64,000 bases of DNA, from contig MU626367.1 in the NCBI GenBank assembly GCA_025603075.1, positions 1 through 64,000 on the forward strand, in the 5' to 3' direction. Positions 56,883 through 63,071 of this stretch are shown one piece after another; the stretch's first letter is position 1; each line of letters starts with the position of its first letter. Both the position numbers and the translations under genes were made by a program. The notes beneath the pieces were generated by a model. The model ran no database searches. It saw only the letters and a list, made by a program, of their open reading frames with translations, and was not told where the DNA came from. This stretch comes from Neoconidiobolus thromboides FSU 785. Its lineage: Eukaryota; Fungi; Entomophthoromycota.

Positions 56883-58147
56883 ATGTCCAAATACAAATCT
56901 CTCCATAAAAGAGACGAATTATTCTCCACCACAGGTCTTCCAAAACCATATAAAAAGAAAGAAGAAGTTATAAAATATCAACCATATTTAGATAAGTTTG
57001 CTGATAAAAGGTATCGTCAATATGAAGGTAAGAAAAGATTGGAATAAATCATATTAAGATTTAAGATTTATTAATTAAATTTCTTTATTTTATAGAATTA
57101 ATAAAAAACCTTAAAACAAAAAATAGCGAGTTAGCTAGGTAAGTATTATCTTTTATAGTCATCAATTCATAAATAAACCTATTAATAATCTCCTACAGAA
57201 GCCATAATCACTCCAAACTCCATCGTCAAAAACTAGAAACAGAAAACACTTCATTGAAAGTACAATCTGTGGAGCTTTCTTTATCGCTTAATCAATCTAA
57301 TCTCAAAATTCAAGAATTAGAAAGTAAATTAAGTTTACAGAATATAGTGATTCAAGATTTATTATTAAAACAAAGTAATATGATTAAGATGATTAAACAA
57401 CAAGGATTGGATTTATTAAATGTATCTAAGAATACTAAAAAAGTGAATTTGGAATTCTGCAAAAAATTAAACTTACCAATTACTGACTTATTGTCACCAT
57501 TGGTATCCTTGGAATTGAGTAATAACAATAGCTTGAATACGGAAAATGGAATTGATAAAGAGGATGGTGTGGATAAAAGTATTGAGCTTCCGCCTTTGGA
57601 AAGCTTGAGCTTAACGGATAAGGAGCAACTTAATTTTGTATCTTTCAATGAAAACAATGAGAAGCAGATAGTTAAATTAAGTAATCAAATGAACAGTACA
57701 GAAAGAGAAAGTTTATCAGCTAGAGAAAGAAATAAAATTACAATTGAAAGTAGAAATAATCTACAAGATGTAGAAAGAAACGATTTAAAAACTGTGAAGA
57801 GAAAAGATCTACAAAGTGAAGATATTAATAAATCACAAATACAACTTAGTGAACAATTAAAAGTAAATAAAAAGGGTTCGGGTTTATCTGTAGTTCCAAT
57901 TAATAAAAAGAAAATGGAGGAGATGAGGGTAAACAAAAGAAAAGAAAAAGAAGAAAAAGAAGAAAAAGAAGAAAAAGAAGAAGAAAAGGGAGAAGAAGAA
58001 GAAAAGGGAGAAGAAGAAGAAAAAGTAGAAGTAGAAAAATGTTCACGTAATTTAAGAAAACAAAAAAGGATCAATTATACTATTTTAAAGGGCAAAATGT
58101 TTTTTAAAGCTGGATCAAGACGTGCTAGGAAATTAATGAAAACCTAA
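56883..58147 (+). CDS. Coiled-coil protein, shugoshin-like (3 exons)
   Basis: ATG 56883 plus two introns join the 57254 ORF in frame; KNSELARSHNHSKLHRQKLETENTSL resembles the shugoshin N-terminal coil; basic C-terminal RNLRKQKRINY resembles the SGO motif; Glu/Lys repeat at about 57950-58030. Confidence 0.5.
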
Positions 58148-58349
58148 AATATTGATGGTTTCTTTATTGTTATGATTATTTGAATTCTAATTCCTTATCC
58201 TGCATTTGCTAATTTATTATTATTGAAACTCAAATCACTCAGTTTTTTATACTTACTCCTTTATTCATAGCTTAATTTATCAAAATAAAAGTATAAAAAA
58301 GTAAAAGTAAATTTAATTAGCTAATTTTCATATATAAATATATGTATAT

Positions 58350-60182
58350 TTAATAACTTTCTAAATTTAAAATTTTAGCAGCCGATCTCATACAATTCCA
58401 ATATTTAGCATGACAACTAATTACTTCATAAACATCTTTTTTGCCCTTCTCACTTACATCTTCAAATTCAATTGTATTGGGTACATCACCTAATAATACT
58501 TTACATACTGCTAAAACTGATTTAGCAATTGCATCTGGATTATACCCTCCCTATTAAAATAAAATTAGTTTAACTTAGTTATTAGAATAAATATTTTATT
58601 TACTTCTAGACAAACTGCTAATTTACCATTAGCCAATCCTTTCAATAAATAAGTCATCATCGCATAACCATCAGGAGTTACTTTAAATTCTCCAATAGGA
58701 TCGCCTTATTTATATTAGTTTATATAAAAATATTAGTTTTATTTTAAAAACTACCTTTAGCTGCATCAAATCCAGCAGAAACTATTAAAAAGAATAGTCA
58801 TTTTAAAAGGATCATAATAATTATATAATATTAAACCTTACTAACAACCAATTCAGGATTGAATTCCATAGCCATTGGCATCACCACTTTAATAAAAGCA
58901 TAAATATAATCAGCATCTCCCATTTCTTTTTCAGTAAAGGCAATATTTACATTTCTATTATATTTTGTATTTTATTTTAATATTTAATTTAATTTTATAA
59001 TAAGTTACCTTCCAATACCTTCTCCTTTACCAATATCTCCTGGATGTCCAGTCATTGGATAAAATTCATTACCATATCTATGTAATGATATATAAAGTAC
59101 ATCTTTTTCATTAATAAATGCGTCTTCAATTCCGTTTCCTTTATTATTTTATTTAATTATCTTAATTATCTTATTCTAATTATCTTATTTATACCATGAT
59201 GTACATCCCTTAACTTAATTAATATTATATAATATTATTTTAAACAGTTTAATATTTATTACCAATCCAATATTAACACTTTCTTTACTCCATATGTCCG
59301 TCTTAATTTTTCTACTCCAATAACCTTAATTATTGATTATTATGACCATATATTGTAAGTTATGAATTGACTTACAACATTATTGAAGAAACAAAATCCC
59401 CTTTTAAAAAAGCATTAAAACCTAATTTTTATATTTTAAAAAAGCAAATCCCAAATATTACATTGCCTAGACAATAATTCATTAATACAATATATCTAAT
59501 ACTCTTGTAAAAACAATAAAATTACATTTTTTTTCTCTGCATGATGGCCGCTAATAAAAATTAATTAATATCCTTTGTATAATTTATACAAATTAGAAAT
59601 AAATTTTTACGGCGGTCTAACTACTGCAATCCCATTACTAATATTATTTAATGCAATTTCTTTAAGCAGTTCAAGTACTCCACCACATGATAATCGTGCA
59701 CAAAAATGGGTACTTTTATTAAAATAAACAGAATCCCCATCTTGAGTCAATTCTTTTAATCTTTTTAAGCTTAATTCTATAAATAAAAAAATAATATTAG
59801 CTTCCTCCATCTTTTTAATTTAAATTCACAGATCCTTTAACTTACTTTCTGTATCTTGCATAAATTCTAAATGTTCTCTATCGTGGTAATACAAAATTTC
59901 AAAATCATTCACTTCTCTACATGGTATATTTTTCATTCTTTTTAATAAACCCAGTTCTTGTAATAATTTATAAATTTTATAAATTCGTACTGGATTTTCT
60001 GGATGGATTCCAGAAGCTTGATCTATTTGATCATGATTCAATAAACGTGCATCATATACTATTCCAGTCCCATGTGTAAGCTCCGATAATAATGTTTCCT
60101 GTTCTTTTTTCTAATTGAAAATTGATGTTGAATGAAATTATTGTTTTGAATATTCGAGTTGACTTACTATGTTATCGTTCAT
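58350..60182 (-). CDS. HDA1: Class II histone deacetylase (Hda1/Clr3-like catalytic domain), highly fragmented by introns
   Basis: Spliced motifs HPENPVRI, AVVRPP|GHHAE, AMGFCFFNNV, ILDW|DVHH|GNG, SLHRY, FYP, VSAGFDAA, LE|GGY; all catalytic residues present. Confidence 0.88.
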
Positions 60183-60647
60183 TTTTAAACGAATTGAAAA
60201 ATTGAAAATACAATTTAACTTGACTATTATTTTTGTAATATGTTGTGTAATGCAGTTTAATTTCTAGAATAGTAAACCAATCAGGTTTGAATTTCTTTGT
60301 CATAAAATAAAATCAAAAATTTCAATTCTAATATTGATAAAGTTAATTAAATGTACATGGGCAAATGATTAAACTAACAAAAATTAATTAAATTTATTTT
60401 TGAAAGTTAAATATTACAAATGAATTGTTTATAAAACAAAATATGATAAATAATATGAAAGGATGGGAAATGTCATCAAAATAAGATAGAGTGGCTGAAT
60501 TAACTAAGCTTTAGAAAAATACTAATTACTTAACAAAACAAAATATATTCAACATATTCTATTAAACAAATAAAGCACAAAAGAAGCTAAAAACAAAATA
60601 ATAAATATATTTAAAAGCAACAGCTAATATTTCAACCTCTTAACAAA

Positions 60648-62403
60648 TTAATTTAAAAACATCCAATATTTTTTAAATCTATTATTAAATGCTTTGACTA
60701 TTGAAATAATTTCTTCTGAAGGTTTATAATTCGTTGGTATATCGTTGCTATTGATATTTTTACCCATAAATAATTTAACACATTCTTCCATTATATTTTT
60801 AATATTTTCAATGGAATTATCTACCTAATTAATAATATTAGAGATTAATTAAATGCTAATGGTGTTATACTGCTTACTTCTACTGCTAAGATTAATTTCT
60901 CCTTTTGTACCATTGACAAGTAATATAATAAATGAATATAAGTACTTGTATTCAATTGTTTATGTTCTATTTAATATTTAATCATTAAAGTTAATTATAA
61001 ACGTAAAATTATATAAATAAACTTACTTTCATTTCTATTAAAATGTGTTGGTACTATAATATTATTATTATCAACATAAATATAATAAATAAATAATATA
61101 ATTCAATTACTTAAAACAAAATCTGGATTAAACTCCAATAATATTGGTAATAAAAGTTGATGAAATAAAAATAAAATATCTTGATTAATTGTATCATTGA
61201 ATTTTAAATCTAGACTAATATTCCTTAAAATGAAAATGATTGCTAAACTCGACTTTAATATTAATATGAAATATGTAAACTTACTTTCTTATGTTATTCT
61301 TACTTAGCTCTTCATTTCCATTATTTCTATTTTGATTATTTGTTATTGTATTAATACTGATTACTAATACATCTTTATCATTAAAATTATTTTCAATTTC
61401 CTTACCTAATTTAAAATTTAGTATATTGTCATAATAATTTAATTAGTTTTATATTTATTACTATGACATAAATCCCTAATTATATGAATTACTTTAATTA
61501 AAAATAGTATTGTATTAATTTAAATTACCAATTAAATATAGCTACTCTTGATTTAGGTGACTGTACAAAATGATGGTTAAGGGCATCAGCCTAATATTTT
61601 AATTATTATTTTAATTAAAATATGTAATAAAACTTACAATACTATAAATGATAAACAAGATAAATAATAACTATGATTTAGTATATTGCTTTTATAAACA
61701 AAATTTAAGTTACTATTTCTAATTAATGATATTAGTAAATAAATTAAATTAATTAATAATAATTTACTTTTTCATTATCAACTTCAGGACCGCTATTAAT
61801 AATAATTATATTAATATAAATAAAATAAAAGATTAAATTACCAGGTTTGAACCAAACAAATTGATGGGTTAAATATACCAAACAAGCATGAATTAATAGC
61901 CAGTTTAATTATATCTGTTGATATACAATTACATAAATTTTTCATTAGTTTATAACCTTCTGAGTTTTTGTCGCTGAATTCTTTTTTTGTTTCTTTCTTT
62001 TTTAATATGTTATCTAAAAATAAGAATTTGATTTATTGATGTTTATAAATTAAATCAAAAAATTACAATATCGTTCCATAATTAAGTTAGTATATCCATT
62101 TTCATCCATTTTATTAATAAAAAAACCCAATTCAGGCTGAGTATCCTTCAATAATAAGAAAGGATAAAATAATTTAACTGGATCTTTTGAATCATCTCCT
62201 TTAATATAGCTTGTATTATTGCCTTTATCTAACATAAATAATGCGCTATTATAAATCAATTGTACTTTTTTTTTAATATTCTCTTTTTTAATTTCGTTTC
62301 GTGTTTTTATTTCTCTTGAATTATTTAATGTAGTTGATGTTTCCGAAATATCATTTTGTTGTTTAAGTTTTTTAATAATTTTTTCAGGTATTTTGTTATT
62401 CAT
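60648..62403 (-). CDS. Catalytically dead HDAC-fold paralogue (pseudo-deacetylase), multi-exon
   Basis: Spliced segments AIFNW|DLCH|SKEIENNFNDKDVLVISI, LLPILLEFNPDFVL|IPTHFN, YIHLLYYLSMVQKEKLILAVE|VDN and KKYW are colinear with the adjacent HDAC and share its intron positions. Confidence 0.72.
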
Positions 62404-62540
62404 CTTTTAATATATTAAATTTAAAAAATATTAAAAATTAATAAAATAGATAAAACTAATAATCATCAAAAAAAAACACTATTTATTCCAATTGACTAAC
62501 TCTTTGCCCTAGTTCTCATTGGTCAATTCGAATCATTCCA

Positions 62541-63071
62541 TCATTTCTTTAAATTCAAATTCAACTTATCCAAAACTGGTACTATAAATCCAACAATATC
62601 TTCAATATCATCTTCCGCTTTAATGTTTATTATATGAACATCCTCCTCCTTGTTTTTATCGGGTACTTCTAATGTATCAAACTGAGATCTTAATAGCTTA
62701 GTGCCCATAAAATGATTTTTCCTTAGCATTAATCTTTGATAAATAGTTTCATATTTTAAATCCAAATAAACAATAATAAATCTTTCAACTCCTTTCTTTA
62801 ACTTATTTCTGTATTCGTTTTTTAAAGCAGAACAAGCTAAGATTACCGTATCATCTGGATGGGTTTTCAATACTTCACTTAAAGATAACAACCAGGGTTG
62901 ACGATCAAGATCAGTTAATGGATGACCTAACTTCATTTTTTGTTTATTACTATCACTATGGTAATCATCCGCTTCAATATAAGATATGTTATAATGTTGA
63001 CTTAATTTGGATGCAATACTACTTTTTCCACTACCACTAACACCCATAATTAAAATTACTGTTTTGGCCAT
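62541..63071 (-). CDS. Gluconokinase (GntK/IdnK family)
   Basis: MGVSGSGKS P-loop, EADDYH, NKQKM..GHPLTDLDRQPWL, ACSALK, HFM...LLRSQFDTLE. Confidence 0.93.
   Translation of the reverse strand: MAKTVILIMGVSGSGKSSIASKLSQHYNISYIEADDYHSDSNKQKMKLGHPLTDLDRQPWLLSLSEVLKTHPDDTVILACSALKNEYRNKLKKGVERFIIVYLDLKYETIYQRLMLRKNHFMGTKLLRSQFDTLEVPDKNKEEDVHIINIKAEDDIEDIVGFIVPVLDKLNLNLKK

Follow-up and report, generated by a model that had tools for sequence, protein, structure and literature searches.

Organisation of the locus

The DNA analysed here, called the window throughout, is a stretch of 64,000 nucleotides (positions 1 to 64,000 of contig MU626367.1) from Neoconidiobolus thromboides FSU 785, a fungus of the Entomophthoromycotina. 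It corresponds to contig C110 of the genome assembly (G000; 24.6 Mb in 799 contigs) and has a G+C content of about 26%. Two neighbouring genes on its minus strand are the subject of this report. The downstream one encodes an Hda1-like class II histone deacetylase (HDAC), and the upstream one, which we call pHDA, very probably encodes a paralogue of that enzyme which has the HDAC fold, is catalytically dead and is under selection. pHDA is the gene K502DRAFT_342829, and the public record of its product (KAI9293923.1, here P0001; 378 aa) gives it as a hypothetical protein and lists no precomputed Pfam domain. The HDAC product (P0122, 384 aa) carries the public label 'histone deacetylase superfamily, partial'. 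Both public proteins were exactly reproduced by joining exons of the window.

pHDA lies directly upstream of the HDAC gene, and the gap of about 465 bp reported in the original prediction, which was made from the nucleotide sequence alone, proved to be exactly 465 nt from the pHDA stop (60648) to the HDAC ATG (60182). The strand and the order common to both genes, the short distance between them and the existence of class IIb enzymes with two domains per chain raise the possibility that both frames form one gene, joined by read-through or by a long intron and encoding an HDAC6-like protein whose N-terminal domain is dead and whose C-terminal domain is live. We consider such a fusion very improbable and rejected it, because the spacer has stops in all frames and an oversized intron from weak donors would be required. 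The pHDA TAA coincides with the end of the domain. To reach HDAC exon 2, splicing would have to start at weak donors within the last pHDA exon, cutting off the last helices, and to remove an intron of 550-714 nt, whereas the remaining introns here have only 43-69 nt. The public annotation also calls two genes.

Exon-intron structure of the two genes

Exon models were built from three-frame translations together with the nucleotide sequence and were then checked numerically. The pHDA model obtained in this way has 12 exons and 389 aa (395 aa with an alternative acceptor), against 10 exons in the public model, and the HDAC model has 13 exons and 382 aa. The proposal of roughly ten exons with an intact reading frame thus holds for both pHDA models, and no internal stop was found. 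All 11 pHDA introns are of the GT-AG type and 43-61 nt long; with the main (389-aa) model the introns of both genes are all GT-AG and span 43-69 nt, and the 395-aa alternative contains one intron of 25 nt.

When the two proteins were globally aligned with their intron marks, every one of the 11 pHDA introns coincided in position and phase with an HDAC intron (11 of 12), in agreement with the shared intron positions and phases that had been predicted. The extra HDAC intron, located at the 5' end after codon 5, has no counterpart in pHDA. Six pairs of exons have equal lengths in pHDA and HDAC (25/25, 5/5, 62/62, 14/14, 113/113 and 27/27 nt), and the 14-nt microexons of both genes were found exactly at the coordinates at which they had been predicted (Table 1).

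Our models and the public ones differ at the 5-nt microexons. In the HDAC gene this exon leaves normal introns of 59 and 61 nt and gives GHHAEKKN-AM-GFCFFNN, with the same spacing as in a 58%-identical relative (P0123; GHHAVHDQPMGFCFFNN). The public P0122, which differs at 59462-59466 and 59515-59550, extends exon 4 through an atypical GTTTTT donor, followed by a 114-nt intron, and reads GHHAEKKN-VILL-GFC; judging from the sequence, it is probably wrong at this site. The 5-nt microexon of pHDA is likely, as indicated by colinearity and intron sizes. In the public P0001, exon 3 is joined to exon 6 by a 177-nt intron that bypasses the 5-nt and 28-nt exons, which are jointly in frame; an alternative acceptor at 61688 would lengthen the 28-nt exon to 46 nt. 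Both public gene models at this locus therefore probably miss 5-nt microexons. The choice between the public and the microexon-bearing forms leaves the conclusions on homology, dead site and selection unaffected. Single exons or the public P0001 and P0122 were used in all database and structure searches, and the microexon-bearing spliced models were analysed locally only.

Table 1. Positions of the two genes, of their exons discussed in the text and of the spacer (window coordinates).
Feature	Position	Strand	Remarks
pHDA gene	60648..62403	-	ATG 62403 to TAA 60648; catalytically dead HDAC-fold paralogue (very probable)
pHDA exon 1, 337 nt	62067..62403	-	Lys/Asn-rich N-terminal extension of ~45 aa and start of HDAC fold
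pHDA exon 2, 172 nt	61842..62013	-	Phase 2 end just before GPE (family: RPPGHH)
pHDA exon 3, 25 nt	61768..61792	-	Same length as HDAC exon 4; (C)GPEVDNEK in place of (P)GHHAEKKN
Putative pHDA 5-nt microexon	61714..61718	-	AG|AAATA|GTAACT; counterpart of HDAC 5-nt microexon; absent from public model
Putative pHDA 28-nt exon	61643..61670	-	Counterpart of GFCFFNNV exon; absent from public model
pHDA exon, 62 nt	61529..61590	-	Same length as HDAC exon 7; ends ...VAIFN-W, phase 2
pHDA 14-nt microexon	61462..61475	-	(W)DLCH; zinc ligand His to Cys
pHDA exon, 121 nt	61285..61405	-	Substrate-tunnel loop (family HRY..FYPGTG) replaced by Asn-rich stretch
pHDA exon, 113 nt	61111..61223	-	Same length as HDAC exon 10; helix alphaF and EFNPDFVL; best conserved segment
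pHDA exon, 27 nt	61027..61053	-	Same length as HDAC exon 11; IPTHFNRNE; GFD to HFN
pHDA exon, 89 nt	60878..60966	-	Helix alphaG and strand ...LILAVE
pHDA last exon with stop	60648..60824	-	VDN for GGY (catalytic Tyr lost); C-terminal helices, KYW tail
Intergenic spacer, 465 nt	60183..60647	-	Stops in all three frames
Active Hda1-like class II HDAC gene (P0122)	58350..60182	-	ATG 60182, stop 58350; all catalytic residues present
HDAC 5-nt microexon GCAAT	59462..59466	-	Flanks AG and GTAATA; gives canonical ..NAMGFCFFNN..
HDAC 14-nt microexon	59195..59208	-	(W)DVHH

Homology and fold of pHDA

BLASTP aligned pHDA and HDAC with 24% identity over 191 aa (E 2e-14), the similarity being significant only in the C-terminal half, and the score of the whole-length alignment was 23 standard deviations above that of shuffled sequences. 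The N-terminal halves alone did not show significant sequence similarity (z 0.3), and the homology of this half is supported by the shared intron positions and the predicted fold. The HDAC profile PF00850 matched P0001 with E 2.9e-5, the aligned part being colinear (profile positions 139-252 of 298). At 24.0 bits this match falls short of the Pfam curated cut-off of 27.9, and for this reason no domain is listed for P0001 in the database. An exon-by-exon Pfam scan of pHDA gave a single weak PF00850 match (E 0.26). The best match of P0001 in a phmmer search of the PDB was HDAC6 (E 1.6e-15), both domains of which were matched, followed by HDA15, HDAC7, Hda1, HDAC4, Clr3 and HDAC10.

An AlphaFold2 (AF2) model of P0001 was obtained from an alignment of 25 rows (A4), made up of P0001, P0122, P0123, P0002 and 21 single-domain homologues translated from metagenome loci. 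Its mean predicted local distance difference test score (pLDDT) was 68.9, with values of 80-94 in the C-terminal half, and its predicted template-modelling score (pTM) was 0.72. Foldseek related this model to the second catalytic domain (CD2) of HDAC6 (E 4e-12), and VIA-align superimposed it best on HDAC4 (Z 25.8, 292 residues, rmsd 3.2 A, model residues 44-378), with Hda1 (Z 25.4) and HDAC10 (Z 24.9) giving similar values. The single-sequence model of P0001 from the ESM Atlas, which is free of any multiple alignment, had a pTM of 0.70 and matched class II HDAC clusters with template-modelling scores of 0.70-0.71 over 318-330 aligned residues. The HDAC-fold paralogue that had been predicted was therefore supported by the PDB search, by Foldseek, by VIA-align and by the ESM Atlas model, and the PF00850 and Foldseek comparisons that had been suggested as checks of the fold both gave HDAC matches. 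All the best sequence and structure matches of pHDA belong to class II, and its gene structure is that of its class II neighbour.

The downstream protein P0122 has every catalytic residue and a PF00850 score of 306.8 bits. Its highest single-domain scores in the PDB were those of yeast Hda1 (332 bits) and Clr3 (316 bits), and then of HDAC6 CD2 (303 bits). The prediction that pHDA stands in tandem with an active Hda1-like gene thus agrees with these results, the activity of the neighbour being judged from its sequence.

Loss of the active site

Seven catalytic or metal-binding positions are invariant in all 24 family rows of alignment A4, and pHDA retains just one of them. The catalytic His pair (H151 and H152 of P0122) corresponds to P172 and E173 in P0001, the potassium-site Asp (D189) to N198, the zinc ligands His (H193) and Asp (D281) to C202 and N287, and the catalytic Tyr (Y321) to N323; the only one kept is the zinc ligand Asp (D191 in P0122, D200 in P0001). 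In the change from EGGY to EVDN, V and D also take the place of the pair of glycines that precedes the Tyr. The Arg of the RPPGHH motif is also replaced (R147 in HDAC, Q168 in pHDA), the GFCFFNN segment is absent from the public pHDA model and replaced or unrecognisable in the 12-exon model, and the FYPGTG tunnel loop has become an Asn-rich stretch. All four substitutions noted in the original prediction (GHH to GPE, DVH to DLC, GFD to HFN and EGGY to EVDN) were recovered on the 25-row alignment, and the loss of catalytic residues that it had proposed extends to six of the seven invariant positions. pHDA, as far as its residues indicate, cannot be a deacetylase, because the His pair, the Tyr, two of the three zinc ligands, the potassium-site Asp and the tunnel loops are all lost.

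pHDA retains one zinc ligand Asp, has a Cys, a residue that binds zinc well, in place of the His ligand, and retains the His next to it, so that it could be imagined as still an enzyme or a metal-binding protein with altered chemistry, using for instance a site formed by Asp200, Cys202 and His203. However, it has neither the His pair nor the transition-state Tyr, it has lost the potassium-site Asp and the third zinc ligand together with the tunnel-forming loops, and the AF2 confidence is low around these loops; we regard such a function as quite improbable.

Selection versus decay

Neutral decay was simulated by introducing substitutions only into the HDAC coding sequence, towards the local intron composition, until protein identity reached 24%. 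In 300 runs the resulting sequences acquired on average 32 in-frame stops (minimum 19), and on average 16 of their 22 splice dinucleotides were broken (minimum 10), whereas pHDA has no stops and no broken dinucleotides (0/22). When decay was taken only to 50%, 40% or 30% identity, none of the 200 runs at each level remained intact. The other two frames of the pHDA coding sequence contain 29 and 67 stops, the probability of 389 stop-free codons estimated from base composition is about 1e-18, and the G+C content of the pHDA exons is 22.6% vs 13% in the introns.

We did consider that pHDA might be a decaying pseudogene or an annotation artefact without a product, a possibility that would fit with the lack of a detectable orthologue and of a precomputed Pfam domain, and with a very low-complexity and AT-rich coding sequence. 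This seems hardly credible, since none of the 900 simulated unconstrained copies kept an open frame and intact splice sites, even at 50% divergence, and the HDAC fold is still predicted by a single-sequence method. Pseudogene decay was accordingly rejected, given the absence of stops and of broken splice sites at 24% identity. Since pHDA shows none of the roughly 32 stops and 16 broken splice dinucleotides expected of neutral decay, selection for an intact, spliced and translated pHDA appears to be the only reasonable reading, as the original prediction had suggested.

Deacetylase genes in the genome and neighbouring genes

A six-frame PF00850 search of the genome detected class I-type HDAC genes on contigs C12, C108, C128 and C155, in addition to the gene of the window. 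When P0122 was used as a query no further class II-like gene was found in the genome, the HDAC of the window being the only class II enzyme detected, and pHDA is present as a single copy. Two Rpd3-like class I HDAC loci (C155:45886-46755 and C361:534-1403) had identical scores (290.9 bits, 442-aa open frames); the C361 locus is probably an assembly duplicate of the C155 locus, because C361 is a short contig, or else a very recent duplication.

P0122 ends right after the catalytic domain (window 58148-58560), and the convergent gene that follows directly leaves no room for an Arb2 exon. The relative P0123 likewise stops after the domain, suggesting that an Arb2-less Hda1-like enzyme may be a trait of this lineage. 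The only matches to PF11496 (HDA2-3) in the genome were open frames of 1,090-1,533 aa on contigs C40, C71, C51 and C7 (L093-L095), which are probably SNF2-type helicases rather than true Hda2 or Hda3, and therefore the genome may lack the accessory subunits of the yeast-type Hda1.

The gene convergent with HDAC is an open reading frame of 297 aa (57254-58147), in which an imperfect GAA/AAA repeat (57900-58040) encodes a Glu/Lys-rich run (KEKEEKEEKEEKEEEKGEEEEKGEEEEK) near the C-terminus. On the other side of the pair, a gluconokinase-like single-exon gene (62541-63071, minus strand) has its stop only 137 nt (62404-62540) from the pHDA start codon, so that the pHDA promoter must overlap the 3' end of that gene. 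A scan of the sequence for bacterial-type promoters and terminators gave results at the level of shuffled sequences and is irrelevant for a fungus.

Relatives and phylogeny

Exon 1 of pHDA (112 aa), the fastest-evolving third of the protein, was compared by HMMER with 1.84 billion representative proteins and had P0001 as its sole match, 100% identical over the exon, with no relative beyond itself. P0001 is the lone member of its own 90% cluster. A word search with the full-length protein, in which shared 5-mers were required, returned P0001 itself and one distant HDAC but no orthologue, and a metagenome scan with P0001 did not reveal an orthologue either. A profile search with the P0001 and HDAC exons recovered only P0122 and one relative, P0123, and no fungal orthologues. 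The metagenome scan with the HDAC alignment yielded 80 loci of at most 44% identity, mostly prokaryote-like or ciliate, and none of the 80 had a second, degenerate HDAC-like gene beside the homologue.

In a maximum-likelihood tree P0122 grouped with P0123 (SH-like approximate likelihood ratio test, 99) and fell outside the groups formed by the first (CD1) and second catalytic domains of animal HDAC6. The approximately unbiased test did not reject pHDA as the sister of the neighbouring HDAC (p 0.41), with the pHDA branch being saturated; because of this saturation the duplication is not datable by the tree.

P0123 derives from a metagenome contig of 1307 nt (L092; JGI 3300030548, Ga0210252_10199722) that contains an intronless HDAC. 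A one-base frameshift at 180-230, between ...ADDYEL and FHTQEHIDFM, was found in this contig, which is probably derived from a transcript of an unsampled relative and carries a sequencing error. In two other metagenome contigs (L052 and L079) the class II HDAC homologues are broken only by single in-frame stops within one frame, suggesting a reassigned stop codon (ciliate-type code) and not introns.

Proposed role of pHDA

Class II HDAC domains normally act as butterfly-shaped two-fold dimers, as in the Hda1 and Clr3 homodimers, the CD1-CD2 pair of HDAC6 and HDAC10, in which one domain of the pair is live and the other dead. For Hda1 and Clr3, butterfly dimers of the HDAC domains have been described (PMC7793584). 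The two genes of the window are best explained by a probably old tandem duplication of a single class II (Hda1-like) HDAC gene that left both copies pointing the same way. Downstream, a normal zinc deacetylase would have been maintained; upstream, pHDA has lost the catalytic machinery but none of its introns and no part of the predicted alpha/beta deacetylase fold. We propose further that pHDA would be the non-catalytic protomer in a pair with the neighbouring HDAC, contacting it through the C-terminal half that is better conserved (alphaF, alphaG, the alphaH region and the tail), and would stabilise, target or regulate it; its Lys-rich extension at the N-terminus might contribute targeting to the nucleus or to chromatin.

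That pHDA is a non-catalytic protomer of the neighbouring HDAC is the most economical inference, and we advance it tentatively, at an even chance or slightly less. The pairing is suggested by the lack of Arb2 in the HDAC and by the finding of no class II-fold protein in the genome apart from this enzyme and pHDA. Identities between pHDA and HDAC amount to 44/184 in the C-terminal half (alphaF to alphaH and tail) and to 17/120 in the N-terminal, active-site half; helix alphaF has 14 positives out of 20 positions, and the KYW tail is conserved. This distribution resembles that in the dead domain of HDAC10, which diverges fast but keeps its interface helices. The helix names of pHDA were assigned by position in the fold, without superposition.

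Several points weigh against this interpretation. The better-kept alphaF and C-terminal half is equally expected of a buried fold core, and no interface is singled out by it. The AF2 model was built on an HDAC-only alignment and is hence biased to the HDAC fold, and for this reason the agreement of the single-sequence ESM model matters. A six-frame search of the genome, run without a positive control, detected no Arb2 domain (PF09757). The tree gives no supported position to pHDA, whose branch is as long as about 10 substitutions per site. No pHDA orthologue appeared in any collection searched, with no close-relative genome within reach, and pHDA may be private to one species. Finally, the public pHDA gene model may be ab initio or homology-based.

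A selected dead paralogue could also have a job apart from the HDAC, as a scaffold in another complex, a ligand binder or a decoy for HDAC partners, the adjacency of the two genes being a scar of the duplication. The fold, the dead site and the selection fit equally well with such a role, the tandem position is the expected outcome of this kind of duplication and need not mean co-function, and the extreme divergence of the N-terminal half together with the Lys-rich extension could reflect a new function. However, the loops of the acetyl-lysine tunnel (GFCFFNN and FYPGTG) are deleted or Asn-rich, and without them a role of pHDA as a substrate 'reader' is unlikely. In addition, the partner of an HDAC domain is another HDAC-fold domain in every solved class II example, and the neighbouring HDAC is the only such domain available in the genome. 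On balance we think an independent job rather unlikely.

A stronger form of the pairing with the neighbouring HDAC, which we find doubtful, is that this lineage of entomophthoralean fungi has replaced the ancestral, Arb2-held Hda1 homodimer by an obligate heterodimer of one live and one dead HDAC-fold subunit encoded by two genes, so that the HDAC10 architecture would have arisen a second time, independently and in split form. From its dead member such an obligate heterodimer would gain stability and, via the Lys-rich N-terminus, nuclear or chromatin targeting.

Full-text searches of the literature found no free-standing fungal pseudo-deacetylase, nor a free-standing gene of this kind paired with its active parent, and the term was used there only for HDAC10 and the class IIa enzymes; as far as those searches go, pHDA is undescribed, as had been thought possible. 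A fold and a family can now be given to a public 'hypothetical protein' that had no domain call, and pHDA is well supported as a pseudo-enzyme, yet known from one genome. If the proposed complex is true, the locus would represent the class IIb architecture split by nature into two genes, in which the role of a non-catalytic protomer (stability, targeting, allostery) could be tested with separate chains, and it would show how a class II HDAC is assembled in a fungus without Arb2 and perhaps without Hda2/3.

Comparison with known systems

The pseudo-deacetylase domain of HDAC10 (PsiDAC) has neither zinc ligands nor catalytic residues, and it diverges fast (28% identity between zebrafish and human) while its interface helices are kept; the interface consists of alphaF, alphaG, loop LH and the C-terminal tails (PMC5454378). 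Soluble protein was obtained from full-length constructs only, and cutting the linker does not separate the heterodimer formed by the two domains (PMC5454378). pHDA resembles PsiDAC in being an HDAC-fold unit without catalytic residues that evolves faster than its active partner and stands beside an active class II deacetylase unit, and the nicked HDAC10 shows that such a pair is possible as two chains. pHDA nevertheless falls outside the PsiDAC group. PsiDAC is C-terminal and shares a polypeptide with the active domain, whereas pHDA is encoded upstream by a gene of its own that runs from ATG to TAA. Helices A and B2-B3 and loops L1-L5 are missing from PsiDAC, whereas pHDA is predicted to be full-length, about 300 of its 335 residues aligning to HDAC structures. 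pHDA would also come from a fungal duplication of an Hda1-like gene, and its pairing with HDAC is inferred only.

HDAC6 CD1-CD2 likewise consists of two class II units that arose by duplication and lie head to tail; the domains pack with pseudo-two-fold symmetry, and they are the best PDB sequence matches of pHDA. Both HDAC6 domains, however, are catalytically competent and belong to a single chain. The analogy with HDAC10 and HDAC6 drawn in the original prediction is therefore apt in principle, in view of the butterfly dimers and of the nicked HDAC10 pair (PMC5454378, PMC7793584), but the dead unit here is separate, upstream and full-length.

Hda1 and Clr3 are the closest to the active neighbour by single-domain score, and the HDAC domains of Hda1 dimerise. 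Hda1 also requires non-catalytic subunits, in the Hda1-Hda2-Hda3 complex (PMC7793584). They differ in that Hda1 and Clr3 are homodimers with a C-terminal Arb2, whereas the N. thromboides HDAC ends after the catalytic domain, and the partners Hda2 and Hda3 have a helicase-like fold and not the HDAC fold.

The class IIa enzymes (HDAC4/5/7/9) have been called 'pseudodeacetylases' (PMC12747566). They share with pHDA the class II fold and a crippled catalysis and serve largely as scaffolds, and HDAC4 was the top structural match to the pHDA model. In these enzymes, however, only the catalytic Tyr is lost (Tyr to His) and the zinc and the tunnel are kept, whereas pHDA has lost six of the seven catalytic and metal positions as well as the tunnel loops.

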